A stretch of DNA of 64,000 nt from Mytilus californianus (lineage: Eukaryota). Positions 891 through 62,400 of the stretch are shown here, one piece after another. Location of the stretch: the NCBI RefSeq assembly GCF_021869535.1, contig NW_026262712.1, positions 33,046,001 to 33,110,000 on the forward strand, written 5' to 3'. The position numbers and the translations under genes are program-made. The notes below the pieces were generated by a model. It saw only the letters and a list, made by a program, of their open reading frames with translations, made no database searches and had not been told where the DNA came from. The stretch's first letter is position 1. Every line of letters begins with the position of its first letter.

Positions 891-3800
891 TCTTGTCTAG
901 TGAGATTCTAAAGATTGTTAATTTGATGTCTGAAATTATCAATCCAATATCACTGCCAGTTTCTTCTGAAAAAAGACATTTAAATCATTTATTTGACGAT
1001 GCATACAACACAGTGAATGCTTACTTTGTCTGTGCATCTGCTTTCATTCAAGTTCGTACAATTTCGCTTTCTTTGACTTCAATTTCTGTCTTAGCTTACA
1101 TTGGCTTTTGATATGTTTACTAAACATCGCTGTACTACTATCACATCAATTAAAGGTTTGCGGTCTCATTCTCCATCTTTGTAACCTTTTCCGATGTAAA
1201 AACAAGAGGTTTTAAAAAAGAAAAAAAAATCAATCAAAAGAAGTTGTGTTGAAATGATATGAAATCAATGGTCATAAATTGTGAAGCTTTTTATCTGAAA
1301 GTAATATACAGTTATTCAACAAGACAGTTACTTCTTCAAATGAATTTAATTTTGCAAGATACTTGTCAAGATAATGTCAACAGTTGCACAAAAGCTGATT
1401 GACTATTGTCAAAAAAGTAAGAATAAATCTCCACACATTTAACAACGTAGACTATAAGTGTTTATGCTGCAAAATAAAACAGGTTTGAATGAATAAGTAT
1501 AATTGTTTTATATGATTTGGTCCATATCAGATTGGACATCTTAATGAGTCAAGGAAATAAAGTTACATAATCTTTGAACATTGCAATCTATCTTATAAAA
1601 ACAGTAGACAAGAACATGCGTTCTATCTATCAGAAGTTAGATAATTAAAAAAAATCATCATTCAGTTATAATTCATTCAGGGTTAACATGATTGATATAG
1701 ACGATTTATGTAGCAAAATAGAGAGACAATGTTTCAAACAAAGTAAATGGGAAAAATGTAAAGAGACCTGAAAATCAAACAGGACATACACTTCTGTACG
1801 CACACTATCAAAACCAATATAAATATACAGCCATCCTAAAACTTTGATTAAGTAAAGGCAATTTCAAATTAGAATGCGGAAGCGTTATTACACTCTACGT
1901 ATGATACTCGAATTATTTGCGAAACCCAAAACAAAGTAATTTAGAAAAATGAGAACAAAACGTTCTTTTTAAAAGATAAAACGAAACTGTTATCTTCAGA
2001 TTGTAAATGAATTGAAGAACGCTTAAAATCGCTTTTTGGTAATTTAAGAATTTCTGTATAAAATACAAAATTTGTAAATTCCATTTGATGTCGATTCATA
2101 ACATTCTTTACACAGAAGCTAGACTACATCGATTTGAACATTCTTTGGTTCAAATTAACTGCCATTTTTGCAACACAAAAACAGTTTTTTTTTTTGTTTT
2201 TTTTTCATAATTGTAAGAATATCTACCAATTAATATTAGAATTGCAAACTATATTAACAAAAGTACACTACACAGTAGGTATTTATGACAGGTTTTTAAA
2301 GGAAAATATATAGCCTAATGTACATAGTCAAATGGACTATATGGAAACTTCGGAATCTAATAAAGTTTGAAAACATCACTTGCAATAGTAATAGAACTAT
2401 TAGACAATTCTAATGTGAACTAAAAGAAAATATCGTTTTGCGTTTAAATCATTTACACAATAAAGAACCAGATATCAATAATGATCTGGCACACTTATTA
2501 GATCAGATATGTAATAATGAGGTCAAGTGTTTACTTTCACATTTTTACAACTTCAATACATTCAATTAGAAAAACATGTGATTATGTCTACTTACTTATT
2601 ACATTTACATGGTTTATAAAAAAAATAGAGCAACGTACATAAACTGATTAAACAGATATCACTGTTTATAGATCTGGTGTGATCGATTTAATGTATTACG
2701 TTGGGTGTGTTGGACTTTTGTGTTAAATTGATATAAGAAAACTACAACATGTAATTTTATAAGTTATCTCATGAGAAAGCAACACAGGGATCCTAAGTAT
2801 GCTCTACTTTGCTACTAAGGTCATTGTAAAAGAATATTTGAAATAAACTGTATTTGAATTAAAAAAAAAAACGCTTAAAAAATTCTTAACATGGTTGATA
2901 TCCTCTTCATGTTCTTCTACAATTCTATTATTGGTCCAATTAATCAAATCTCAAGTATTGATTACCATAATCTTTATCTTAGTTCACAGCAGAAAAAAAT
3001 AGTTTAAAAAACAGTTTTGCGTCATTTGAATTTTTAAAATGTATCTCCACGATAATCAGCAGATATTAAACATCCCGGTTATAGCATAGTGTTCTTCATA
3101 TAATATCTTGTAATACGAGTTCTAACGGTAACTCAAAAAAAAAAGAGCTGATTTTACAAACATAAGTCTGCGGCAATCATTAAGAACTCCAAAAATTTTG
3201 AGCAGTGTGAAATGTTGTGATGTTGCCACTCCATAGATTACTTTAGTGTCAACATACGAATTGATAATTGCAACTTATATCATTCTATTTATCTTTATTT
3301 TATTTTTCATTGTGTTCCCAGTCCTGAAGGTTTATTGTCCTTTTAAATTTGATTCATTTGTATTTCCTATATTTGGATTTGACATATTTTCTAGAACACT
3401 ATTACTGAAATTACTTTCAAGGTCTTCAGTCTTCCCAAACTTCTCTTAGAAAATCAATAAAAAATTACTTAAATAACTTTATATGTTAAAAATTTTTTAT
3501 TAATGACGTTAATTTAACGTCAGAAGTCATACTTTCGACGCTGTTTAAAAAATTAGTTCATGGGAAGAAATTCTAACACTTCAATGGTTGCACCTCAAGC
3601 AATTAATGTTTAACATGTTTTAATTGCTAAAATATTCCTATGAGTTCCTTATTGATACTTGTAAAAATAATGAGAAAAGACAAATAGATTTCCTCATTTG
3701 CTATTGTTCTTTTTTAACTTTGGCTAGGAAATATCTTCTATATAGTGTTTTGTTAATATTTGATATGATATCCGTTGAAGGCATAAACGTATGGAGAGTT

Positions 3801-4277
3801 TTAATTTTTTCAAGTTTTGTTTTTCATTTATAGTTAGCTTTCGTCTTATGCTGTGACAATTAAATACATTAACCATATAAAAAATACAAAAACAAAATCA
3901 ATTCTTCACATTTTCTTATGAAATGTTTACATAATTATGATTTATTAGACACTCAGTGAAAAGAAATGTCAGCTTGTAGAATAGACCAAGAATAGTTGCC
4001 ATTGAGTAAATGTTATATAGAAAAGAATGAGAGTAGATAAGAGATATTCGTTTATGAGACAGCAACCCAATGACAAAACTAACAAATAAACACTTCAAAA
4101 GCTAACAAAACCTTTAAACAGACTTATTAAGAAGGGATATAGTTACGATACTGTTGTCAGGTCATTAAAGATTGCATATTTTGGCTTTAATATTGATTCA
4201 CTTATAGGGTCTTTGCATCGGAATTAAACATATTTATTCTAAAACCAGTTGTTGGCATGACACGGGTTATGTTCTTC

Positions 4278-4344
4278 TCATATATTTTATGATGGTATAA
4301 TACTAAACCCCTAACAGGAGGGATTGTGCCTGATATTCATATGA
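4278..4344 (+). promoter_or_regulatory. Form-2 SECIS element
   Basis: Helix I TCATAT(4278-4283)/ATATGA(4339-4344); core ATGA(4289-4292)...TGAT(4331-4334); helix II GGTATAAT(4294-4301)/ATTGTGCC(4323-4330); apical AAA (4305-4307); ministem CCC(4308-4310)/GGG(4320-4322). Confidence 0.85.
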
Positions 4345-4544
4345 TGAAGACAGAATCGTTCAATCAGTTTAATTGAGGTCTGGATCTGGCATGTCAGTAA
4401 CTGCTAGTAGTCTGTTGTTATTCATGTATTATTGTCATTTTTTTTTTTTTTTTTTCTTTTGTTTCCTATTATGACATCGGTTTCGGACTTCTCTTAACCT
4501 GAGTTTTACTGTGCGTACTGTTGTACGTTTGTTTTTTCTACATT

Positions 4545-4636
4545 GGCTAGAGGTATAAGGGGAGGGTTGAGATCTTAAAAAACATGTTTAACCCCGCCGC
4601 ATTTTTGCGCCTGTCCCAAGTCAGGAGCCTCTGGCC
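4545..4636 (+). ncRNA. Type-P3 twister-ribozyme-like motif
   Basis: P3 GGCTAGAGG(4545-4553)/CCTCTGGCC(4628-4636); P2 CCCC(4592-4595)/AGGG(4558-4561); L1 GAGG(4562-4565); predicted cleavage U4589^A4590; P5 CGCA/TGCG; P4 CCTG(4610-4613)/CAGG(4622-4625); L4 TCCCAAGT(4614-4621). Confidence 0.85.
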
Positions 4637-5629
4637 TTTGTTAGTCTTGTATCAAATTTTTAATTTTAGTTTCTTGTGTATAATTTGGAGTTTAGTATGA
4701 CGTTCATTATCACTGAACTAGTATACATATTTGTTTAGGGGCCAGCTGGAGGATGCCTCCGGGTGCGGGAGTTTCTCGCTGCATTGAAGACCCATTGGTG
4801 GCCTTCGGCTGTTGTCTGCTCTATGGTCGGGTTGTTGTCTCTTTGACACATTCCCCATTTCCATTCTCAATTTTATACAGAGGGTAGCATACAGACCGGT
4901 GTTGTTTTCTATAATATAAAAATGTTGGCCAATTTGTTTATCAAAATGATGCTTGAGATGATCAATCTTTTACAAAAATGGTACAAATAATATCGGTAAT
5001 TAATGATGAAAGAACTGATAATTATACCAATGATTATAATGCAGTCAGATTGAAATGAAGCATTATTTTGGCAATATCTCTGTTGGCTATCATATTATGA
5101 TATTGAGGTGACTTGAACAGACCACACATGATATGTTGAAAGATAGTATCTGATATAAAGTTGTTATATCATATGACGGTACAGCATCTGAAAAGAAGAA
5201 AGTATCCTCTGGTAAAAAACTCTTTTTTTTTATATGTCTAAAAATTTAAATGCTATAATGATTACAATTTGTATTTTTATGATTATTTTTAAATTGAATA
5301 TGCTCTGATCGTTGTAAGAAATGATAAAATTTTCAAAATATGTAATGTTCATTCAGTAGCTGTTACGATAAATTATTTGTGCGATTATCAAGCGAGTGAA
5401 AAGCAAATTTGTAAGAAATGAATATAAATATACAAAAAAGATAATTCGCTAAATTTGTCTCGCATGATATTACACTAGAAACAAAATGTTGAGAAATGTT
5501 AATACATTTAAGTGAATTCTGAAGCGTATCGTTTGTTTTAATATGAATAGTTAATGTTTAGAAAAATGAATCTATGAATGTTAATTCTGAGACAGAATAA
5601 TGCTGTTGACGCTTTTCATTTATGGAAAA

Positions 5630-6130
5630 AGCAAAATAACAAAAATAAGGAACTCCAACGAAAATTCAAAACAGTAAATCCCTTATCAAATGACAAAATC
5701 AAAAGAATGGAAAACAGCTGTCATATTCCTGACTTGGTAAGGCATTTCCTTAGGTAGAAAATGGTAGATTAAACCTGGTTTTATAGCTTACTTAACCTCT
5801 CACTTGTATGACAGTCGCATAAATTCATTGTCCATTACATTGACAACAATGTGTGAAAAAAACAAACAAACATAATAGGTAAAAATGTCAAAAAATTGGG
5901 GCACAACAGTAGACACTGTGTTATAATCTTAATCCATTTGAAAACAAAGAAATATGTCAACAAAGAAAAACAAAATGGCATATAGACAAGGCATATAAGC
6001 AAAACTGAAAGTCAAGAATACAAAAAAAAGGACCGTAGCACAATAACACAATGGCGGGATGAATAAGTACCGAGCCACGCCAAAAGGATATTACCAAAAA
6101 TTAATTAAACAGTAAAGGTTAATGATTTAC
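5630..6130 (-). mobile_element. Dispersed repeat (family B) with twister-like motif at 5718-5814
   Basis: P3 CTGTCATA/TATGACAG (8 bp); GTGA-GAGG-T; T^AA-TCT-AC; L4 TACCAAGT; 1-nt deletion in P4. Homologous to 9430-9695, 24545-24755 and 43164-43333. Confidence 0.75.
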
Positions 6131-7606
6131 AAAGACAATATGTTAAAATATCTAAAGTAAGGCAACCGTAATTTACAAATTATCAAGACTGATTAAGAAG
6201 ATACGAATTAAGATAACCACAAAAAACTGAGGAAATCGCATGATCTCCAAAAGAAACGAGACTGGGTGCAACGACAGGATAATCGTCGTGTCCTTTTCAT
6301 GTATCATCCGCCATGCGAAGCCACATTCATCCTAAATGTCACAATCAGAACTAGGCCACATTCGGTAAAATTACAGTTCAGACGACTTTCTTGGTATCTA
6401 GAGACCGTAGACCTAGATAAAATGTCGCTAGTGAGTTGAGACACCAGATTCATCCCTCAGCATGAAGAATTTTGTGAGTAGATGCTGTAAATTGTATCTA
6501 TTCATAGTCACTGTTTTAAGATATTGACCTACATAGATCAACAGAAGCAATTTTAGTAATTGCTTAATGATGTCTATTTTGATTCTTATAAACTGTTTTA
6601 AAATCTTCGTTTTTCTCGATTTAAATGTCTTTTAGGACATTTAGTATAGTTTTCTTTTAATTAAATGTGAAACGGTAGTATTTTCTAGGCATTACGAATA
6701 CTGGTAGCCTTTTTAGAATGTACAGCATCATCTAAAACTGACCCATTATCTATATGCCAACTTAACTGAAGTGTTCCATGTTAGCATTCAGAAATACATG
6801 CAAATATATATGACGAACTACTTTTTCTCCTGATATCTTTATAAACTGAAGGCTGGTAGCCATTTCAAATGGCATTGAATAATTCTTTTTTTTTTAAACA
6901 ATACAATTATTTTTTTTCTACACTTCACGTATCCTTCAGCTTGGAAAACATTGTTAGTTGATGCTGTATTTTTTGTCCAATCACAGTCAATGTGTTGTGA
7001 TATATTGACCTGAATAGCATGCACAAAACAGCAATCTATTTTCTGGAATGTAAATTCTACCGTTTCATCTGAATAGAGCTGAACATAACTATAGAAACTT
7101 GGTTTGTTGTACGGCCAATAAAGCTAGAAAAAAAAAGAAGATATCAAGAGGACATTAGAATGAACATTTGGGGAGTAAATTCCTAGTCTTAATCGTTTTT
7201 AGGTATATTTATGTATTTATGTATATATTTAGGGGTAGGGGGCTTTACTTCGCTGCATCTTCTTACCTCTCAACTGGTCGTCCCAACAAATTTGTTTTCT
7301 CTAAATATTCGTTAGGGGGCCATGAACTGATTCTGGTAATATTTTTACTTTTGAAAACGATTAAAAAAAATACCAGGAATTTATATTACTTATAGGCTGT
7401 GTTTAAAGAATAAGCATACACGATTCTTTAATTATGTAATCGCTATTTTACGAAATTTTCCTTTGATCTTGCTGACTGATACCTTCCTTTCTCAGCGGAG
7501 TCGAGTGATATGAAAAATTATCGCTAGAAACTTAGGGGGCACGTGGCGTTGCTAATGAAATTGACATGAAATTGACAACGTTGTCATAGGTAAAATAGCG
7601 TTAAAC

Positions 7607-9429: not shown

Positions 9430-9695
9430 TACCTATTATGTCTGTTTTGTTCACGCATCCTTGTAAATATAATGGAATTCGAAGCGACTGTTATACAAGT
9501 GAGAGGTATAGCGCTATAAAACCAGGTTTAATCCACCATTTTCTACATTTGAAAATGCCTGTACCAAGTCAGGAATATGAAACTTGTTGTCCATTCGTTT
9601 GATGTGTTTTATCAATTGATTTTGCCATTTCATTAGGGACTTTCCGTTTTGAATTTTCCTCGGAATTCAGTATTTTTGTGATTTTACTTTTTATT
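9430..9695 (+). mobile_element. Family B repeat with near-intact twister-like core at 9488-9583
   Basis: GTGA-GAGG-TATAGCGCTATA...T^AA-TCC-AC-C-ATTTTC..GAAAAT-G-CCTG-TACCAAGT-CAGG. Confidence 0.8.
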
Positions 9696-9845: not shown

Positions 9846-9918
9846 TTTTCGGCTGTTGTCTGCTCTTTGGTCGGGTATTTGTCTTTTTGACATATTCCCC
9901 ATTTCCATTCTCAATTTT
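9846..9918 (+). mobile_element. Extreme 3' fragment of the Naiad 3' UTR
   Basis: TTCGGCTGTTGTCTGCTCTTTGGTCGGG...CATATTCCCCATTTCCATTCTCAATTTTA matches ~4805-4875. Confidence 0.8.
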
Positions 9919-11804
9919 AAGATCAACCACCTTTTTTTCTTTTTTTTCTTTTTTTTGCTGAGGTTCGTGCGTGTTGCTCAGTCTTTATTTTCCACGTAGT
10001 GATTTGTGGATGAATGTTCGTTTTTTTGTCCTAATTGATTTTTGTCCAGGCGTTGTTAATTTCTCTATTTGACCTTTTTAGGGGGTTTTGAATTTTCCCT
10101 ATTTATTTTCCAAATAAGAACTGGGGTAACAATGAAATACATGTATTAAAATGGCTTTAAATGATCTTCTATCTGTTTCAAATTTCAAAAAGAAAAACGA
10201 TTGAGATATTGCATACATTTATACATTTATTAAACCTTCTCGGTTTGAAATATGCGTTAATAGCGTTTAACAGGCAATATTAAAGGTTCAAGTATGAACG
10301 AAGGTGTCTTTAATATGTGCAAAAATAAATGTTTTAGCAGAGAAATTATTAAAATCTTTGGTTTTATCTAGTTGTTGTTTTAATTTTGTTATACATTCAG
10401 TAGCTAGGTTCATAGCTCAACTTCATATAAACAATTAGTTACTCAAATTTTTGAAACAAATTACATTTTTATCAATAATAAGTTGATACAAGGCATGATT
10501 GTAAGAAACAATTTCACTTTTAATTAATAATGTGCAGATAAATCTATAAAAAAAAAATAGAAAAACACCTGTAGATTTGCTTTTCTGCACGTATAACTGA
10601 TGATTTTCAGCAAAAACAAGAAACTTCATCTTAGAAGGAACAAACACTTGCTGTCTTTTTAAAACTGTCAATTCATAAAAGATAAATATAATTCCAAACA
10701 AAATTGCAGCTGAAAATCAAATCAACTTAAATATCATAAATGTTGACGTTTTTCATTTATTTCGTATGCATTTAATTATGGCAGAATAAAAGATAGGTCG
10801 AGATGACGATTTAACATGCAAATCTTTCAAATAGATTACTTGGGTTTCTAAAATGTCTTACAATGGTATGGGAAGAAATTGATTATAAACTGTATACAAA
10901 CAACTAATTGAAAAATATCGAAATATACTAGAAGCGTGTACAGGTGAAAATTGATAAAAAATATTAAAAAACATAGGGTTTGACTGCGATTTTCATTTTA
11001 TAATATTTAGATTAGGAAAATGCAAGAGGTATTAAAAATATTTAAATGTTTTAATGTTATAACCTTGCATCGCACAAGTAAAACTCGATTAAAACATACC
11101 TTATAGTCTAATGCGTTATAGATCACTTAAAGATCAACAGAATATATGATCGTTTGATAAAGTAAGACACACTTTTACAAAATCTGCAATTTCTAGTGCA
11201 TTTGTTTTTAAATTATCCTTCTAACAGTTCAAACGAGCAACCTCATATTGTTGCGCTTATTAATAGGAAACAAACATTTTAAAGCAGACGTAATCTAAAT
11301 TGGATCTCTAAGCAATGTTTTATTTAATTGCTTTAATATTTGAACATGACAAATCTGTTGATGTGCGTTAAAGTATTCTTCATCTAATTATTAAGCACTT
11401 TTAAATTAACGATGCATTAAGTAGCCTTCCATGGTTGAAATATGTATTAGAGACAAGAAACTTTACAGGTTCAAAAGTGTAAAAGAAGGTGTCTTTAATG
11501 CGTGCAAAATTTAATTCTTCCGGAGAGGCAGTTTTAAAATTCCAGTTTTTAACTGTAGCTTGTTATACATTGCATTTGTAAGGTTTAAAGCTAAACGTAA
11601 TATTAACAATAAATTACTCAAATTTTGAAAGCCAACGGTTTCTTCTGTTATCAATTATTAGTTGATAAAATGAAAGATTTAAAACCAATATTTTACTTTC
11701 TTTTAATACAGTACAGATTAATCTAATTGGAGAATATGAAACTGTAGATTTGCTTTTTTGAACGTATAAAACTAATGATTTTCAGCAAAAATAAATGCTT
11801 TTAG

Positions 11805-12050
11805 AGATTCAACCCACCATTTTTTCTTAAAATGTTTGTACCAAGTCAGGAATATGGCAGTTGTTATCAAATAGTCCGTTTCTATGTATGTTGGCGTTTA
11901 TTTTTGTAGCAGTTCAGTGTTTATGTTGTTCCGTTGTTTTCCTCTTATAGTTGACGACTTTTTCTCGGATTTTGGTTTGTGATCCGGATTTGTTTCAGTA
12001 AAATCGATTTATGACTATTGAACAGCGGTATACTACTGTTGCCATTATTT
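11805..12050 (+). mobile_element. Family B' repeat beginning at about the twister cleavage site
   Basis: Starts TTC^AACCCACC at 11808; interrupts a duplicated module that is uninterrupted at ~21055-21080. Confidence 0.75.
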
Positions 12051-13983: not shown

Positions 13984-14196
13984 GTCCTGTGGAGCAGGAT
14001 CTGCTCACCATTCCGGAGCACCTGAGATCACTCCCAGTTTTTAGTGGCGTTCGTGTTGCTCAGTCTTTAGTTTTCTATGTTGTGTTTTGTGTATTATTGT
14101 TTGTCTGTTGGTCTTTTTCTTTTTTAGCCATGGTGTTGTCAGTTTGTTTTCGACCTATGAGTTTGGATGTCTCTTTGGTATCTTTTGCCTCTCTTT
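13984..14196 (+). mobile_element. Family D repeat, 5'-truncated
   Basis: Core CCGGAGCACCTGAGATCAC; absent from the paralogous region at ~22290-22305. Confidence 0.8.
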
Positions 14197-14267
14197 TAAA
14201 CATATATACTTTATAAAATATGTCATCAATGATATTTAGATTACTTTTATTCAAAATATAATTAATT

Positions 14268-14457
14268 AAAGAGGAGGGATGAAAGATACCAGAGGGACAG
14301 TCAAACTCATAAATCGAAAACAAACTGACAACGCCATGGCCAAAAATAAAAAGACAAACAGACAAATAGTAATACAGATGACACAACATAGAGAACTAAA
14401 GACTAAGCAACACGAACCCCACCAAAAACTGGGGGTGATCTCAGGTGCTCCGGAAGT
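14268..14457 (-). mobile_element. Family D repeat, 5'-truncated, inverted relative to its neighbour
   Basis: Reverse complement of ~14010-14196; absent from the paralogous region at ~22370-22385. Confidence 0.8.
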
Positions 14458-15676
14458 TCTTAGGACTTGAGAGATCCTACAGGTTATTTTTTTTAGTGAT
14501 CAAGTCAATTATTTTTATATGATAAAGAGAAATTGCTAACTTGTAAAAACCATTGAAGTAGAACATAGTTTTCCTACGCAAAATTTATATTTTTTTTTTC
14601 AGTTATTAGTTAAATTTTGAAAGATAATTATCCGTTACCTACCACTTTGTTTTCCTTTCAGTAACTAATATGAAGAATTCGCAGGCTATTTGTTCCGAAA
14701 ATATATAGGAGGTCCTGTTATATAGAATAGCCTGATGCTATGACATATCTCTTGTCGTGATTAAACATTATTTGGCATTGGTCTTTAAACTAGTTTGTTT
14801 ACTTTTTTCCTTTTTTAAGGTTAGCTGCCAAAGAGTCAAATGTTGAAGGCACCTAAACAAAGACTAATAACTTCCAGTAATGGTCACTTACATTCCTTTC
14901 ATAGCTTTTACCTGGCTTGGAATCTCAAACTAAGCTAAGTCGTCAACGGTTTTGGACATAACTACTTAAAAAGGTCTATAACATTGAAAGAACAGGGTGT
15001 CCTTCGCCCCTGGTTTTTATCTTACAAATAGAGCACTCTAATATTGAACTTCTTATATGCAAATAACGAATAGTTTGCGAGTATATCCACTTATAACATT
15101 TCTTGGACTTTCGATGGACTTTATCTACTAAACGGTAGGCTCATAGCTTTTCTGTCAAAGCATAACAACGTTGTGGCTTTATGTCCTTAAAAAATTCCAC
15201 AATTTACTATTTTCTATCTCTTATGGTTATGGTGACATACAACATTTGTGGAACATTGACTATCTCTCTAACGAACAAATCGTAACTTTTAAGTCAAACA
15301 TAACAAAGTCGTGACTTGCTGTTCCATACATTTTCACCAATTACTTAAGTCAACCATAACGACGTTGTGATTTGCTGTTCCAAACATTTTCACCATTTTC
15401 TTTTTCAGAAACTATTACAACATTCTGAGATTAAGGTGGAAAGGGTATTCTGTGAATTGTCTTTTTCATTTTGTCATGGCCGCGTGATAAGGAGATGTCT
15501 TATGAAGTCACTAAGTCTCGACGAGTTTGAAATTTTGAGTTTGACGCTTGGGGGAGTGGGTTTAGATTTCGTGTTGTACGAAACTACGTAGTACCTTTTC
15601 GTTGAAATGAAAGACTACCAGCATTACCAAATTAATATGTTGCACCATGCTTTCTGGTTTTTCCTGACTGGTAAGT

Positions 15677-16000
15677 GAGCGCTCAAAAACATGTATAACC
15701 CCGTCACATTCTTATGTGCCTGTCTCAAGTCAGGAGCCTGTAGTTCAGTAGTTGTCGTTGGTTCATGTCTGTCATATTTGTTTATCGTTGTTTTGTTTTG
15801 TTATGAATTATGCCGTTAGTTTTCTCAATTGAATTGTTTCATAATTTTCATGTCGGGGCCTTTTATAGCCGACTATATGGTTTGAATTTTCTCATTGTTG
15901 AAGGCCGTACGGTTTCCTATAGTTGCTTACGTCCACTTTATTCGAACTTTGGTGGATAGTTGTTCATTAGCAATCATACCTCGTCTCTTATTTTTATATT
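15677..16000 (+). mobile_element. Family C-like repeat with the 3' half of a twister-like motif
   Basis: TAACCCCGTCACATTCTTATGTGCCTGTCTCAAGTCAGGAGCC; tail TTGTCATTAGCAATCATACCTCGTCTCTT; absent from the paralogous site at ~22915-22930. Confidence 0.7.
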
Positions 16001-18074: not shown

Positions 18075-18448
18075 CATTTATGTATTTCTCTGTGCTGGGT
18101 TGTTTTGTGTTTGTTTGTACTGAATTTCTGTCACGCAGTGTTATCCATTTAGTGGTATTTTTAACATTGCCATATAAGCGGGAGGTTATGCTGGCCATAA
18201 AACCAGGTTCAACCCACCATTTTTTCTTAAAATGTCCTGTACCAAATCAGGAATATCGCAGTTGTTATCAGACAGTCCGTTTCTGTGTATGTTAGTGTTT
18301 GCTTTTTTTGTAGTTCAGTGTTTCTGAAGTTCCGTTGTTTTCCTCTTATAGTTGATGTGTTTCCCTCGGTTTTAGTTTGTTACCGGAATTGTTTTTGCTT
18401 AATCGAATTATGACTATTGAACAGCGGTATACTACTGTTGCCATTATC
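18075..18448 (+). mobile_element. Dispersed repeat (family B') with twister-like motif at 18168-18260
   Basis: P3 TGCCATAT/ATATCGCA; GCGG-GAGG-T; C^AA-CCC-AC; P5 ATTTT/AAAAT; P4 TCCTG/CAGGA; tail GAACAGCGGTATACTACTGTTGCC shared with 11805-12050, 24293-24479 and 45085-45497. Confidence 0.75.
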
Positions 18449-24544: not shown

Positions 24545-24755
24545 TTGATGTTATTGTTGTCAATATAATTGAATTCAATGCGACTTTCATACAAGTGAGA
24601 GGTTTAGTTAGCTTTAAAACCAGTTTTAATCCACCATTTCCTACATGAGAAAATATCTGTACCAAGTCATGAATGTGACAGTTGTTTTCGATACATTTGA
24701 TGTGTTCGATCTTTTGTTTTGCCATTTGATAAAGGACTTTCCGTTTTGAATGTTG
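24545..24755 (+). mobile_element. Family B repeat with decayed twister-like motif at 24584-24681
   Basis: Homologous to 9430-9695; P4 mutated. Confidence 0.7.
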
Positions 24756-29500: not shown

Positions 29501-29976
29501 CATTAGTTATGTACAGATAACTATCATTAAAGACCAGGAAACAACCTGTAAATTTGTCATAATGTTTGTGAACGTGCAACTTATGAATTTCAGCGAAAAT
29601 AAATGCTTTGATAAGTAATCATTGCAGCAACAAACACTTAACTTTTTTTCTTCAAATTATCAAGTCCATAAATACAAATATCTTTCCAAATCTCATCAAG
29701 TTGAAAAGTCAATGCAACATGTACATTTAACAGAAAGCCAAAAAAATCGTGCAAGTAATGAATTAATGCTTTAAGTTAAAACAAGAATAGTAACCAATTA
29801 ATCTGCGAATTGTTTTGCTAATTGTTGAAAACCTTAATCACCCACGAGTTTTTGCTTACATGTTATAATTTGTAGGTTACTCAATTATAAATGTAACTGC
29901 CCTAAGCTGAGTTTTGACCTTTTCATTCGTTTATGCTACTCAAGTACTAACTCTTATTTGCGGTCTCTGATTTATA

Positions 29977-30146
29977 GGGTTTAACCCACCACTTTCTTCG
30001 AAAAATGCTTGTACCAACTCAGGAATATGGCAGTCTTTTTTTTCACTTGTTCCATAGAGTGATAGCGTTTAATTTGGCTGTTTTTATGGACTTCCCCTTT
30101 TTGAGTTAACCTTGGAGTTTAATTCTTTTGATAAACCTATTTTATT
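29977..30146 (+). mobile_element. Family B-like repeat beginning at about the twister cleavage site
   Basis: Starts GGTTT^AACCCACC...GCTTGTACCAACTCAGGAATATGGCAG; flanks align to the uninterrupted paralogous site at ~12390-12420. Confidence 0.65.
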
Positions 30147-43163: not shown

Positions 43164-43333
43164 TACACTCCAGGGAAAATTCAAAACGGAAAGTGTCTTA
43201 TCAAATGGCAAAATCAAAATCTTAAACACAATAAACGAATGGAAAACAACTGTCATATTCCTGACTTGGAACAGGCAGTTGTTTATGTAGAGAAAGGTGG
43301 ATTTAATCTGGTTTTAAAGCTAGCTAAACGTCT
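43164..43333 (-). mobile_element. Family B repeat fragment, truncated at about the L1 strand of the twister motif
   Basis: Reverse complement contains AATCCACC...GCCTGTTCCAAGTCAGGAATATGACAG and the family B tail. Confidence 0.65.
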
Positions 43334-45084
43334 TATTATATTATTATATTGACAACTCATGCTTGACTTTATTAATTATGTAACTGTTATACTTCAAAAG
43401 GATACAACAGAAAAAGCATACGTTGTGGATCTTCCTGTTCTTATTCTACTTTTTGTTCTGCGAATGAGACTCTTTTTGTGTTTATAACTCGTGATAGAAA
43501 ACTGAAAAAAAATAAGGAATTAAAGTACAGAAGAATGTAAACACATAACAGAAGGAAAAAATAATAAGATACAAGCAGGAATAAAACACAACCATAATAC
43601 AGCACAATACGATGCGGGCAACAAATATAACACAATACCATGTATTCCAAAAGGTTAAAAAGATCCTGCTTCAATTAATAATCGGCAAATATCTAGTAAA
43701 AAAATTACTTCAAAAGTTAGAACATCTGACAAGAGCAATACGCAATTTCTACATATATTCTCTGTACGGATCTTTTAAATACGTGTAATGAAAAATGATA
43801 CCGGTATAGCAGTTCAAAGCATATTAATACATATGAATACAATGCTGATAATTGAATACACAAGATGCGCGTTTAGTATAGATAGGTGTTGGTCGATTTG
43901 TTGCGAAGTTGACGAGCATTAAAAAAAAATATAAATTGCTCTTCCAAGTCTTTTGAACGCATGTCATTATAAACCTGAGTTTCAGAATGTTGTAAAAATG
44001 CTATCATAGGCCTGTTGAACTTATCTATTCGAATGACTTTAACTGAAAAGGGACACAACCACAATTCGGAATTCAGAAGCAAATTCAATGCTACTAACCT
44101 GGTGTTTATGGGTAAAATGATAGACTGATTCGATTACAAAGCATTAGAGTCAAAAACTTTTGGAAATAGGAATAATGTTTATCGTTTATCGTTTTTATTT
44201 CAAAATTCAATTATGTATTCTGATTTTACCATATAACATAACTTTTAACGTTGAATATTGCAAACTATATATTTATCTTAATCATATGAAATAGAATTGA
44301 TGTTAAAAAAAAGAATTGATTCTAAATTAATTAGCATCAACATCGACCATTATAACTAGTACATAAACACCCATTTTATGTTTTACGTTATTAATTCAAT
44401 GTTTGAGAAGAAGAGGCACATGTCTGGGTGAATATTATCTAAACACTGTATCATCAGAATAAAAACTAAGTTAAACAAGTTTGACATTGTTTAAAAGATA
44501 AATCTTTATTAAAACTCAGCTTAAAGGAAAGCGTCTATCATACGATCGATAAGATAAGTTTATGTGAATGAAATATTTATTATTTTAATCTTGGTATCTA
44601 TGATGAGTTGATTCATAATGCTTATAATATTGCAACAAACTAACACCAGGTATTTAATTTCATGCTATGTAGGTGAATTTTTGCATTAAAATCTTTGTAA
44701 AATACATGGCACATTTTGGATACATGTTGAAAACCCTTGAAATGATTAATTGCTTTATTTGATTGGTAAACTTAATCACATAAATACTGAAGTAATTTGT
44801 ACATTCTATGCCAAAGGATCCAAATTATACATTATATGGAATATAAAAAGGCATATTTAGATAATACTTTCGTTTTCGCAGGAAATAAAGACAAAGAATT
44901 GTTTCTTCATATATTGAAAGACGTTAACTATCAACATTCATAATTTTCTAAAAGTAAAGGATTAAGAATTTCATATTCAAACAGATCATATACAGAAAAA
45001 ATATCCCATGACGAGCACAATAAAAAATTATTGGCTGACATATTTTTTGAATATCGCCAGGTGGTAAATAGAGAACACAACAAA

Positions 45085-45497
45085 TGGGTTGATCAATGTT
45101 ATTGTTTATTTGTGTGTTTCTCTGTCCTGTATGGTCTTCCATTTATTTGTATTGTAGTCCTGTCATGTAATGTTTTCATTTTAGTGTTATATTTAGCATT
45201 GCCATTAAAGCGGGAGGTTTGGCTAGCCACAAAACCAGGTTCAACCCACTATTTTTTCTTAAAATGTCCTTTACCAAGTCAGGAAAATGGCTATTGTTAT
45301 CTTATAGTTCTTTTCTCTGTGTGTTGCATATGTTTGCTTATTTCTCTGTGTGTTGCATTTTAGTGTTTCTCTTATGTCTTTGTTCTCCTCTTATATTTGA
45401 CGTGTTTCCCTCAGTTTTAGTTTTTAACCCGGATTTGTTTTTTCTCAATCGATTTATGAATTTCGAACAGCGGTATACTACTGTTGCCTTTATTTGT
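45085..45497 (+). mobile_element. Family B' repeat with twister-like motif at 45200-45292
   Basis: Homologous to 18075-18448 over its length. Confidence 0.75.
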
Positions 45498-58150: not shown

Positions 58151-59033
58151 CCATCTATCAAATATTTGAGAGTAATTTAGCATGTTGAACGATTTAGAAG
58201 AATATTATTTTCTATAGCTGCATAAAATTGTATCACTAAAAGGTTTTTTTTTTATTATTACACTGTAAATCCATATGGGAAGTGGTTAAAACATATATCA
58301 GCAAACATTTTGGAAAATGTCATATAAATCATACAATTTCATTCATGTTAGATAAATGTTTATTCACATATATTTTCAAGGGCCCCCTGCCTTCAATCTA
58401 GTTTCTAACTTTTTTTAAAGACTTTTTTGTACGCATATTGTATTCCGACCCTCGGCAATGCGGATATGATCAAATCAGTTTTGTATAATATAGATTAAGA
58501 AGTCAAAATAGCGTACATAAGGACCGTCTTAAACTTGCTGTGAGGTAGGAGATTTTTTGTTGTTTTTTGTTTTTGTTTTTTTTTTTTAAAGTCCATATTG
58601 TGACTTTGAGGTGATGAACAGCAATAAAATGGGTGTTCCTTTGCTTTTCTGTGTGCTTTTGCTGTGTATGTACTGATTTTGTGTTATGAATGGATACCCC
58701 ATATCCTTTGCGTTTCTATTAGTGCAAAACAATCCATAAAGACACTGAACCATATTTAAAGAATAGTTTACATACAGCAAATCCAAGATATGTGTATAAA
58801 ATTGAGAATGGAAATGGGGAATGTGTCAAAGAGACAATAACCCGACCAAAGAACAGAAAACAGCCGATGGTACCATTGGGTCTTCAACACAGCGAAAAAA
58901 TCACGCACCCAGAGAGGGCTTTAGCTGGCCCCTAAACAAAAATGTGTACTAGTTCAATGTAAGTGGACGACACACTAACTTCCAAAACATATAAATGAAC
59001 TTAAATTAAAAAAAACCATACAAGACTAACAAA

Positions 59034-59125
59034 GGCCACAGGAACCTGACTGGGGACAGTCGCAAAAATGCAGCGGGGTTAAACATGTTTTGTGAGATCT
59101 CAACCCTCCCCCTATACCTCTAAAC
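59034..59125 (-). ncRNA. Type-P3 twister-ribozyme-like motif in the Naiad 3' UTR (degenerate)
   Basis: GGGG-GAGG-G ... T^AA-CCCC-GC-TGCATTTTTGCG-ACTG-TCCCCAGT-CAGG; L4 and P4 carry substitutions relative to the copy at 4545-4636. Confidence 0.7.
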
Positions 59126-59438: not shown

Positions 59439-62400
59439 TTATTTCCGATGCAAAGACCCTATGAGTGAATCAATATTAATACCAAAATATGCCATCTTTA
59501 ATGACCTGAGAACAGTATCGTAACTATATCACTTCTGAATAAATCTGTTTAAAGGTTTTGTTAGCTGTAGGGGTGAATGTTGACATTTTTGTGCTTTGTA
59601 TAGAATATTACCATAAAGGATTGGATGTGAAATACCTGAACGTTTAAGATGTCTGCATGTTGATTTATATTTACGAATGATGTCCTTGTATCGATGATAA
59701 AATTTAGTAAATGTTTTGACTAGTTTGTGATATCGAAAACCATGATGTAATAATTTTTCAGTAATACAGTGATTTATTTCGTTGAAATTAAATACGTTGT
59801 TAAGTATGTCAATGTATGTGGTAAAGTGGTATTTTAGGATATTTGTATTTTATATATAAGTTTGATTATTTCTATATTTTTAATCTAACTTTATTATTTC
59901 AGAAGATATTATTATTAATGCACTATACGGAGTGTAATTTCAGGTTTGTTCAGGTGTGACCTTATCAGGCGTTTCACTTAGGTTTTATTGGTACTGATTA
60001 GTTCCCAATTCTTTGGTGGGAAGTTTATATTCTATATGGTCACTTTGTGTGATGGACACCATTTTCCATGTTTAGCAAATTGTAAAATTATATTCTGTTT
60101 TGGAGTTTGTTTTTCATGTTTATAAGGTCAGTAATTCTTCTTATACTAATATATTAAATATTTTTCTTTATAACCAGATTTATGCATGATTTATGAATGT
60201 TATGAATGAATGCATGTTTGAATGATGTGTAGATGTGATATGTAAGTATAATGAAAGGAAATGTAAAAGAATTTAAAATCTCTTTAATAATTGTGCTTTT
60301 ATGGTTAAATACGGTAAATTATATAAAACAGCTAAATTTCAGTAAATTGGATTAAACTATTGAATCTTGTAGAAAGAATGATTTATAATAATTTCAGATT
60401 TGAATAAAGTCATAAATTGATAAAGACATCAGATATCTTATTTTAATATGAACGTGTAGTAGCGCTATATATTTAGAATAGGTTAGTTATGATTTTAATA
60501 TTTGTACTATATGTATTCACCATATTGATGATGCACCATGTTGGCATCAACCTGATGTGATTTGAATATTGTCGTATTTCAAGCCTTCACAAATACCTGT
60601 GAGGTAGGTTTTGTTATGTTGAATCTATGTGTGTTTTGCTTATTGAAATGTCTGATTTAGAAAGTGCTTAATGTTTTGTGTGCATGTATATTCTAGTATT
60701 GCATGTATATGTTATTTTTAAATATGCTTATTTAAATTTGGTATTTAACAGTTTATTACATGACTGTTATTATGTATTACAAATACACCGACATATGCAT
60801 TATGATTAGAAATTGGCATTTAGTTGTATTCACAAACAAAAGAATTGGAGATCACTATTTCCGAACTTAATGAAATTATATATTATTATTTTATTATTGA
60901 AATGCTTGGAAAAGTAAACAGTTTTCTTGTTCATAATTGTTAACAAAATGTTTTAAAGCTATATCATGTATATAGTTATTTAATTAGATTACATCCATTA
61001 ATATAATGTATTGTTATTAAAGGGTATTATTTTGGATTACGATATATATACTTCGAAATAAAGAATCCGTAACCCTAAGACAGTTTCTTGTGTGTATTGC
61101 CCCGAAACAAGACTACATATACACGAGCGAATCGAACAAGTTGAGATATTTAAACACCATAAGATGGTGACAGTGGGAACTTCACCATCTAAAAATGGAT
61201 AATTAACAATAGGAAATGAAATGAAAAATCATCTCTTTTATCATAAATTTTGGTATTAAGCTTCCCGTTTAAGATATAGATATCAAGATCCAGGAAAGGG
61301 CAGTGTTCATTGTTAGTATTAGCTTTATCTAAAGTCAATTCAGCTGGATAAATCTCTTTTATTATTGAACATACTGAAGTCGTCATTATATATTAAGAAC
61401 CGATATATCATCCAAATATCTAAAAGTGTTATTAAATTTATGTATCAGATCTTGTTTCGATGGGTCTTTGCTGATTTTAGTCATAAATTCTAACTCATAA
61501 CAATACAGAAACAGGTCCGCAATAAGTGGTACACAGTTAGTCCCCATTAGAATTCTGATAACTTAACGATATACGGAATCTCCATAGCGAACAAAAATGT
61601 TATCTAGTAAAAATTCAAGGGCAGTTATCGAATCAAAGCAGTTCCAATTGGTGCAGTTCTTTTGTTTGTTGTTACTAAAAAAATACCTAAAAGAGTTTGA
61701 ATATTTTTATTCTAATTCTGACTTTTTAAATGCCCATTTAATTAGGTGTGTGAATTTTTTCTTAATAAGATTATAAGGCAAAGTGGTATATAGGGTATAA
61801 AAATCAAAACTTTCAGCAGATTCGAAATCACCAATATAAGCATGCAATTTAGCAAGTACTTTCAACGAATTTTTGACACTCCAAAAGTAATTAGTTCCAC
61901 TATTTTCAAAGGCCTTATTTGAACAATTCATTCCCAGGTTTTTTATTGTACCAAGTGTACTAGTAAGTAGAATAGACAGTTAAGTAGTGGAACAATGGCT
62001 TGCAGACGAAATAAATCTATATTTATAAGGTGTTTTGTGCAGCTTCGGAAGCCAGTACATAGTTGGAACTTTCATTGTATTTGGTTCTGCTTGTAAAGAG
62101 GTAGTTAAAAGTTTATGTTTGTTCCAGATGTCATTTTCCGAAAATGGAGTCGGTTGGAATGTTGGTAAATTCGTGATTTCCTTTCGCAGAACCTCGATGT
62201 AAAATTTAAGTCAAACAATAATGATATTATTAGCAGCCTTATCAACCGGAACAAAAACAAATTCAGTGGAGAGTACTTTTAGATTATGCTTGATTCGAAA
62301 AATATGGCTATTATGGTTGTTGTTAGGAGTAAAATGTTCTTTAAAATGTTTAATACGAATATAAACTATGTTCATTATTGAATTAAAAGAGGAATCAAAG

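Follow-up and report, generated by a model that had tools for sequence, protein, structure and literature searches.

A predicted twister-class motif in the 3′ UTR of a truncated Naiad retroelement copy, with two palindromes in the place of P1

Naiads are among the most abundant retroelements in bivalves and in many other invertebrates. The minimal hammerhead ribozymes of other Penelope-like elements reportedly act as dimers, a result attributed to Lunse et al. 2017. Such hammerheads are documented in canonical Penelope-like elements (Cervera and de la Pena 2014, cited in PMC8557442), and Naiads are the clade of Penelope-like elements that was singled out as ribozyme-less, having no canonical hammerhead ribozyme, an exception that raised doubt whether ribozymes matter for the mobility of Penelope-like elements at all (Craig et al. 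2021, PMC8557442). The same paper gives the diagnostics of a Naiad: an N-terminal GIY-YIG endonuclease, a DKG motif changed to DKA, a CxC motif, a KR-rich block between EN and RT, and a single ORF with a C-terminal RT and no EN after the thumb. Twister self-cleavage is site-specific and yields a 2′,3′-cyclic phosphate and a 5′-OH; stem P1 closes L1 beside the cleavage site, and about ten nucleotides of L1 and L4 are near-invariant, the A following the scissile bond and the active-site G among them. The O. sativa twister uses G45 as general base and A7 as general acid, and P1 is dispensable for twister cleavage in vitro, a mini-twister without P1 cutting at the wild-type rate (PMC5408937).

We analyzed a 64-kb stretch of DNA (hereafter the window) and found, within a Penelope-like remnant, a motif of 92 bases in which all elements of the twister core are present, strand by strand (Table 1). 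We consider it probable, at roughly 60%, that 4073-4876 is a dead, 5′-truncated, non-autonomous Naiad copy carrying a twister-class motif in its 3′ UTR, with self-cutting proposed between U4589 and A4590. A selected twister fold in the Naiad 3′ UTR would remove the ribozyme-less exception and bring in tens of thousands of animal twisters missed by Rfam models. It would also be the first natural twister to have intermolecular pairing elements instead of P1, and the old question of ribozyme function in Penelope-like elements would become testable with a second ribozyme class. A literature search of incomplete coverage found no paper connecting twister with Naiad, Penelope or molluscs.

Table 1 Features of the truncated Naiad copy and of the twister-class motif within it. 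Positions are those of the window.
Feature	Position	Strand	Basis or remark
5′-truncated Naiad-type Penelope-like copy, about 800 bp (last 45 codons and whole 3′ UTR)	4073-4876	+	
End of RT (thumb) reading frame, 45 codons	4090-4224; stop TAA 4225-4227	+	translation
SECIS-like hairpin, 52 nt past stop	4279-4343	+	Rfam SECIS_1, 29.8 bits vs gathering score of 35
T-rich tract	between SECIS-like hairpin and twister	+	
P5 5′ strand (open closing stem)	4545-4553	+	pairs with 4628-4636; 9 bp, one G.U; MFE fold
UAUA spacer	between 4553 and 4558	+	read directly from sequence
P2 3′ strand AGGG	4558-4561	+	A4558 is a copy-specific mismatch
L1 3′ strand GAGGG	4562-4566	+	aligned to GAGGG of Rfam consensus
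A-rich linker, 22 nt	between 4566 and 4589	+	holds palindromes 1 and 2
Palindrome 1, AGATCT (GAGATCTC in family majority)	4570-4575	+	at expected position of P1 3′ strand
Palindrome 2, AAACATGTTT	4580-4589	+	at expected position of P1 5′ strand
Predicted cleavage site U4589^A4590, then A4591	4589-4591	+	aligned to UAA of Rfam twister-P1 consensus
P2 5′ strand CCCC	4592-4595	+	pairs with 4558-4561
T2 5′ strand GC	4596-4597	+	pairs with end of L4
P3 hairpin (stem 4598-4601 with 4606-4609)	4598-4609	+	cmscan alignment to P3 of twister-P1
P4 CCTG/CAGG with loop L4 TCCCAAGT	4610-4625	+	4610-4613 pairs with 4622-4625
L4 loop, in RNA letters UCCCAAGU	4614-4621	+	between CCUG and CAGG
AG spacer	between 4625 and 4628	+	read directly from sequence
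P5 3′ strand	4628-4636	+	complement of 4545-4553; MFE fold, own-partner duplex energy
G+C-rich 3′-terminal domain	4737-4876	+	highest RNA depth of the element

The host element was placed through the end of its reading frame. Over 4073-4879 the locus is 84% identical to a sister copy at 59592-58793 on the minus strand, and the 4073-4876 copy and the sister copy share the same terminus, ...CAATTTTATACA. The tail of the sister copy reaches further (59532-59849, minus strand) and returned 1442 protein matches, the best of which, P0001 (58% identity, E 9e-29), is the last piece of a near-full Naiad ORF on a 3.3-kb scaffold, L003. This ORF contains a KR-rich block, a CxC motif, PADKA (the Naiad form of DKG), RT motifs (RYLDD) and the thumb, and it ends in a stop with no endonuclease after the RT; it starts inside a GIY-YIG-like domain whose end, ...WIKKLQTAYPLGLN, was recognized by eye and has no Pfam hit. 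Because the ORF tail in the window is homologous to L003, which bears the Naiad diagnostics, we assign the host to the Naiads, the DKA, CxC and KR-rich criteria having been read on this relative since the window copy is 5′-truncated. Pfam gave a weak RVT_1 match (E 0.013) and no GIY-YIG on the pieces of the L003 ORF, and no family matches on the ORF-tail homologues, among which the precomputed HTH_animal tag was only faint. The ORF of the element stops about 70 codons past the GFRYHKL thumb motif, and likewise in L003 and in a second outside contig, L001.

The order of the element is RT tail, stop, SECIS-like hairpin, twister and 3′ domain, and the distance from stop to twister is 318 nt in the window copy and 322 nt on L003. 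The outside contigs, which were obtained through protein homology, carry the motif on L003, L001 (two copies), L004 and L005 (two copies). Both L001 twisters come after RT-like frame ends, the first of them 229 nt past the stop, and the motif follows the RT tail by 444 nt on L004 and by 324 nt on L005, so that it stands after a homologous RT tail in four of the five outside contigs that extend past the stop. L006 gave only a weak minus-strand match, with no convincing motif downstream, and L002 ends right past the stop codon. When compared with the selenoprotein-coding Naiads of clams (PMC8557442), the element shares with them a C-terminal RT and a SECIS-like hairpin soon after the stop, is abundant in a bivalve-like genome and likewise has no hammerhead. 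It differs in that the paper reports no ribozyme, in that the SECIS of the window lies below the Rfam threshold, and in that the only in-frame TGA of the family-A window copies aligns to Gly and resembles an ordinary nonsense mutation.

The core letters of the motif are those of known twisters. The Rfam twister-P1 consensus, as given by cmscan, reads ccuuUAAcgCcGCC..P3..cCGGUCCCAAGCCCGg.UAAA.gGcgGAGGGaagg, and the UAA, GC, GUCCCAAG and GAGGG of 4545-4636 match it letter for letter; N-A-A, G-A-(G/A)-G and U-N-C-(C/U)-A-A-G were invariant in all 11 parsed copies and agree with the same consensus. By alignment to the O. sativa numbering, G4562 corresponds to Osa G45 and A4590 to A7. A reading made from the letters of this DNA alone (the sequence-only reading) had already named UAA and GAGG as the L1 strands, a T2 of GC with GU, and a 4-bp P4 with L4, and all three were found where it had put them: the L1 strands at U4589-A4591 and G4562-G4566, T2 as G4596.U4621 plus C4597.G4620 (L4 with the strand after P2), and P4 closing the loop UCCCAAGU. 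T1 is a 3-bp helix in this copy (C4615.G4566, C4616.G4565 and C4617.G4564), in which L4 pairs with the L1 3′ strand and G4564-G4566 supply the guanines. P2 was likewise located correctly, but in this copy it amounts to three pairs plus a C4595.A4558 mismatch. The essential stems P2 and P4, which flank L1 and L4, are both present in 4545-4636, and both covary among families. Osa-1-4 (PDB 4OJI) has UAA, GC, UCCCAAG and GAGGG in the same positions, one for one; it differs in being of type P1, where P1 has its full 5 bp and both P3 and P5 are lacking, and its activity is proven, whereas 4545-4636 is a predicted twister.

From 5′ to 3′, the strands of 4545-4636 run P5a, P2′, GAGGG, linker, UAA, P2, T2, P3 hairpin, P4/L4 and P5b. 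In twisters, P5 reportedly occupies the junction between P4′ and P2′, as is attributed to Roth et al. 2014. The same position for P5 is also found in PMC5408937. Because the open stem of 4545-4636 sits between P4′ and P2′, its topology, judged from strand order, is type P5, with the ends in P5, and not type P3. The sequence-only reading had described a circularly permuted twister core of type P3; the core is indeed permuted, but its ends lie in P5, and the type-P3 label fails, since in the type-P3 of Rfam the open stem directly precedes P4, unlike the strand order seen here. Two helix names change with it: the 9-bp closing stem exists, with its one G.U, but is P5 and not P3 as it had been labelled, and the small hairpin at 4598-4609 exists but is P3 and not P5, since cmscan aligns it to P3 of the type-P1 model, between T2 and P4.

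Type-P5 twisters (Rfam clan CL00120) share with the Naiad motif an open P5, P2′, GAGGG, (the P1 region), N^AA, P2, T2, the P3 hairpin and P4/L4, along with the conserved core letters and both pseudoknots. The Naiad motif differs from them in having no P1 hairpin and two palindromes instead, in falling below all Rfam thresholds, and in its host, the 3′ UTR of an animal retrotransposon. In addition, its L4 ends in U or G and not in C, and the first T2 pair is therefore G.U, A.U or U.G. An Rfam twister match, to which the sequence-only reading had looked for support, did not appear at gathering level: no family reached its gathering score anywhere in the 64-kb window, and the best match at 4545-4636 was to twister-P1 with 13.3 bits against a cut-off of 67.2, spanning P3 and P4 only. 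At permissive thresholds the twister matches were partial and sub-threshold, the best scores anywhere being 24.8 bits against 39.9 (twister-P3) and 24.3 bits on L003. By the Rfam criterion the motif does not count as a twister, and standard pipelines would pass over it. Across the window, hammerhead families gave no match with E allowed up to 10.

Copies of the motif are numerous. Within the window, 12 occurrences of the P4/L4 string were counted at three mismatches or fewer, against 0.12 expected. Eight good copies fall into four families, A (4545-4636, and 59034-59125 on the minus strand), C, B and B′, and from these eight we built a covariance model limited to nested helices, with T1 and T2 left out. 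The model detected 13 window copies at E below 1e-4 and also copies in five outside contigs; with filters off, further window copies were found at 5715-5817 (minus), 43247-43351 (minus), 15663-15748, 11781-11863 and 29961-30036. Copies that were not part of the seed (in the window and on L001, L003, L004 and L005) scored 38-59 bits.

Across families, the paired positions change together. With one representative from each of seven families and seven variable pairs in P2, T1, T2 and P4, 46 of 49 cells were canonical against a permuted mean of 32.1, and 46 was reached in 2 of 5040 partner permutations; because the families are related, the independent events are fewer than the counted cells. The first P2 pair is C.G, A.U, U.A, G.C or G.U depending on family, T1 25.49 is C.G, A.U or U.A, T1 27.47 is C.G or U.A, and T2 13.31 is G.U, A.U or U.G, with C.G in L004. 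P4 is either CCUG/CAGG or ACCG/CGGU, the latter (ACCG/CGGT in DNA) occurring in L001, L004 and L005, where two P4 pairs are both changed. P5 and P3 have about 25% sequence identity between families, yet each matches its own partner: for P5, duplex energy was -10.3 kcal/mol with the own partner and -3.0 across families (1 of 5040 permutations as good), and for P3 it was -3.0 against +0.1 kcal/mol (3 of 5040), with covariation in all four pairs of the P3 hairpin.

In an alignment of 14 copies, taken from the window and from three outside contigs, with T1 and T2 entered as pseudoknots, 77.9% of the paired cells could pair against 63.0% in shuffles, and the covariation score was 0.467 against 0.218; neither value was equalled in 500 shuffles. 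As a control, partners were slid by 1-3 columns, which left 36-45% paired. T1 was 94.7% and T2 96.4% paired in the same alignment and, since both are absent from the search model, their support is independent of the fitting of the alignment. One result counts against our best explanation: families B and B′ have just two to three P2 pairs. The twister fold that the sequence-only reading had proposed is upheld both by its letters, which match the twister-P1 consensus, and by its helices and both pseudoknots, which covary among families. We conclude that, in at least seven element families from this genome and from other assemblies, compensatory changes have preserved P2, P3, P4, P5, T1 and T2, and that the twister fold is clearly under selection.

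What the motif does not have is P1. To call P1 weak in this copy, as had been done, understates the case, as an intramolecular P1 is absent in every family examined. Across 11 copies the P1 strands showed no excess complementarity (-1.8 kcal/mol, against -1.6 for shuffles), and a hidden intramolecular P1 was rejected, there being nothing beyond chance in these copies. The linker of every family holds two self-complementary stretches, whose sequences are unrelated between families. Palindrome 1 reads AGAUCU / GAGAUCUC, GGCGCC, UAUAGCGCUAUA, GGCUAGCC, GAGCGCUC, UGGUACCA, GGGCGCCC or GGGAUCCC, and palindrome 2 reads AAACAUGUUU, AAACGUUU, AACC(A)GGUU, AACCGGUU, AAACCGGUUU or AAAUGCAUUU. In all families palindrome 2 ends at N-1 of the cut site or one base before it; in the 4545-4636 copy it ends at U4589, the base directly 5′ of the cut.

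In 7 of 11 copies the two longest palindromes were together longer than in shuffles (P below 0.05), and in intact copies the linker gained -12 to -16 kcal/mol on homodimer formation, compared with about -6 in shuffles. The palindromes are too short for hairpins and thus point to pairing between two copies, which may gate catalysis. A nested cofold of the whole motif is unable to hold both palindrome duplexes simultaneously, and it is therefore no test of a two-helix dimer. We also tried a tRNA-derived SINE head as a candidate and rejected it, as ARAGORN found no tRNA and the B-box-like GGTTCAA is simply palindrome 2 plus the cut site.

Raw reads from four RNA-seq runs labelled as the same species were placed on the window at 90% likeness. 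They covered 4094-4876 on both strands and stopped sharply at both edges, and depth was zero in the unique flanks (3950-4021 and 4886-5000), indicating that the reads stem from other copies and that the 4073-4876 locus is not read through. About 75-92% of the family reads have G instead of A4558, which restores the fourth P2 pair, and about half or more have C instead of T4576, so that palindrome 1 grows to GAGAUCUC; the 40 best-supported read differences all lie outside 4578-4680. Given these two differences, and none listed in 4578-4680, the 4545-4636 copy is near the family majority but slightly damaged (P2 mismatch at A4558 and a palindrome 1 shortened at T4576). The sequence-only reading had counted it among the window's best candidates for retained activity; both changes are derived, and the reads show no sign of cutting.

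In none of the four runs did molecule ends pile up at 4589/4590 (threshold, ends at a fifth of local depth), and reads span the site on both strands, which argues against constitutive, efficient cleavage of most motif-bearing RNA. This is a weak test: roughly half of the reads are antisense, copies lying within host transcripts contribute most of them, a ribozyme that depends on dimers would leave the majority of molecules whole, and a religated or circular product would restore the genomic junction and look uncut. The nested MFE fold (-36.9 kcal/mol, z = -3.2) keeps P5, P3 and P4. It also displaces P2/L1 by a rival helix of 4564-4571 with 4587-4594 (GGGUUGAG with UUUAACCC), which counts against our best explanation; since the helix would hide the T1 guanines, the cut site and a portion of P2, the fold may represent an alternative conformer that is inactive.

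In the explanation we favor, transcripts of active elements would self-cut between U4589 and A4590, with G4562 acting as general base and A4590 as general acid, after known twisters. The missing P1 would be replaced by the two self-complementary stretches, each pairing with the same stretch of a second copy, which could be another RNA or the upstream pseudo-LTR in the same transcript, and an encounter of two copies would possibly favor cutting, in the manner of the dimeric hammerheads found in other Penelope-like elements. The 4545-4636 copy itself would have no role of its own, in view of its P2 mismatch, its shortened palindrome 1 and the lack of read-through from the flanks. Penelope-like hammerheads offer the nearest parallel: they too are small self-cleaving motifs (here predicted) in a repeated tail (pseudo-LTR), and in both a closing stem would be replaced by a palindrome pairing only between two copies. 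The differences are that 4545-4636 belongs to the twister class, that its host is of the Naiad clade, and that it has two palindromes rather than one.

A stricter form of this explanation is that Naiads carry a dimer-dependent twister, with two palindromes for P1 and activity only on pairing of two copies; we offer it tentatively, as a possibility worth naming. The paired copies would then be the two pseudo-LTRs, upstream and downstream, of a single full-length transcript, or would lie on two RNAs, and cutting would release a unit-length RNA that could possibly be circularized. If true, this would set a counterpart of the twister class beside the dimeric hammerheads and retrozymes known from other Penelope-like elements; all EN+ Penelope-like clades would use self-cleaving RNA, with the class of ribozyme swapped in Naiads.

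Rather unlikely, in our estimation, is that the twister fold was retained while cutting was lost, leaving a structured 3′-UTR module whose palindromes are an RNA dimerization signal. Such a module could help the Naiad RT to recognize its template, or could let two genomic RNAs pair, which leads to the tandem/pseudo-LTR insertions typical of Penelope-like elements. It would account for RNA-seq with no cleavage signature in four runs, for the missing intramolecular P1 and for palindromes that are strongly conserved, and Naiads proliferate without any known ribozyme (PMC8557442). However, the positions needed for catalysis only (the A after the cut site, the next A, G45-A46 of GAGGG, and U..AAG of L4) are constant in every family while paired positions vary freely; a purely structural module would not need them, and their constancy therefore counts against the loss of cutting. 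Twister also functions without P1 (PMC5408937), a further point against this reading.

We regard as improbable an ordinary monomeric, P1-less twister of type P5 that cuts every sense transcript, its palindromes serving an unrelated purpose such as the binding of proteins to DNA or RNA. The core is complete in 4545-4636, and the wild-type rate of the mini-twister without P1 (PMC5408937) would allow it. Constitutive cutting, however, should pile up read ends at 4590, and none was seen; moreover, the constant end of palindrome 2 at N-1, or one base before it, argues that palindrome 2 belongs to the ribozyme. Finally, although every Rfam twister score is below threshold and the P4/L4 string is located in dispersed repeats, it is very improbable that a conserved SINE or MITE core merely resembles a twister by chance, given compensatory changes in all six helices (two pseudoknots outside the model among them), no tRNA-like head by ARAGORN, and a motif linked to RT tails in other assemblies.

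Several observations concern other parts of these elements. Sub-threshold SECIS_1 matches (cut-off 35 bits) precede the twister at 4279-4343 (29.8 bits) and both L001 twisters (6262-6332, 25 bits; 6928-6990, 28.6 bits), three different families in total, and the constant order of stop, SECIS-like hairpin and twister suggests a real conserved hairpin. The family-A ORF tail has a single in-frame TGA, at 59529-59531 (minus strand). We rejected selenocysteine for this codon because it aligns to Gly (GGA) in 4090-4224, L002 and L003; from this alignment it appears to be a simple nonsense mutation. In L003 there is a TGA where Cys is otherwise conserved (VIVVuRKYY). The G+C-rich 3′ domain (GGGGCCAGC...CATTGAAG...TCTCAATTTTATACA) recurs at 58793-58940 (minus strand) and at 9848-9919, in another family, and 4804-4875 is 93% identical to 9848-9919; because it is shared to this degree with a copy of another family, the domain may be an RT recognition module common to several families. 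Families B and B′ (9485-9586, 18167-18261, 24581-24684, 45199-45293, and 5715-5817 on the minus strand) have the twister and no upstream RT-tail frame within 1.6 kb, and they may be short non-autonomous elements borrowing a Naiad tail.

Long, near-perfect hairpins at 14141-14326 and at L001 9800-9867 gave sub-threshold matches to plant or animal miRNA families (35 and 41 bits) and look like inverted-repeat (MITE-like) elements, not miRNA genes. On L005 the two twisters, 1936-2044 (minus) and 3158-3259 (plus), lie inverted on either side of the RT tail, an arrangement that fits the inverted 5′-truncated partner copies known for Penelope-like insertions. Among the RNA reads, five in run X24 (two start points) join 4876 back to 4091 in a head-to-tail junction, as is expected for tandem copies or circular RNA, five reads being too thin to interpret. 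Loose read ends at 4875-4877 indicate that other copies continue into diverse A/T-rich sequence (agreement about 0.41), and this continuation past 4876 fits the (TA)n target preference reported for Naiads.
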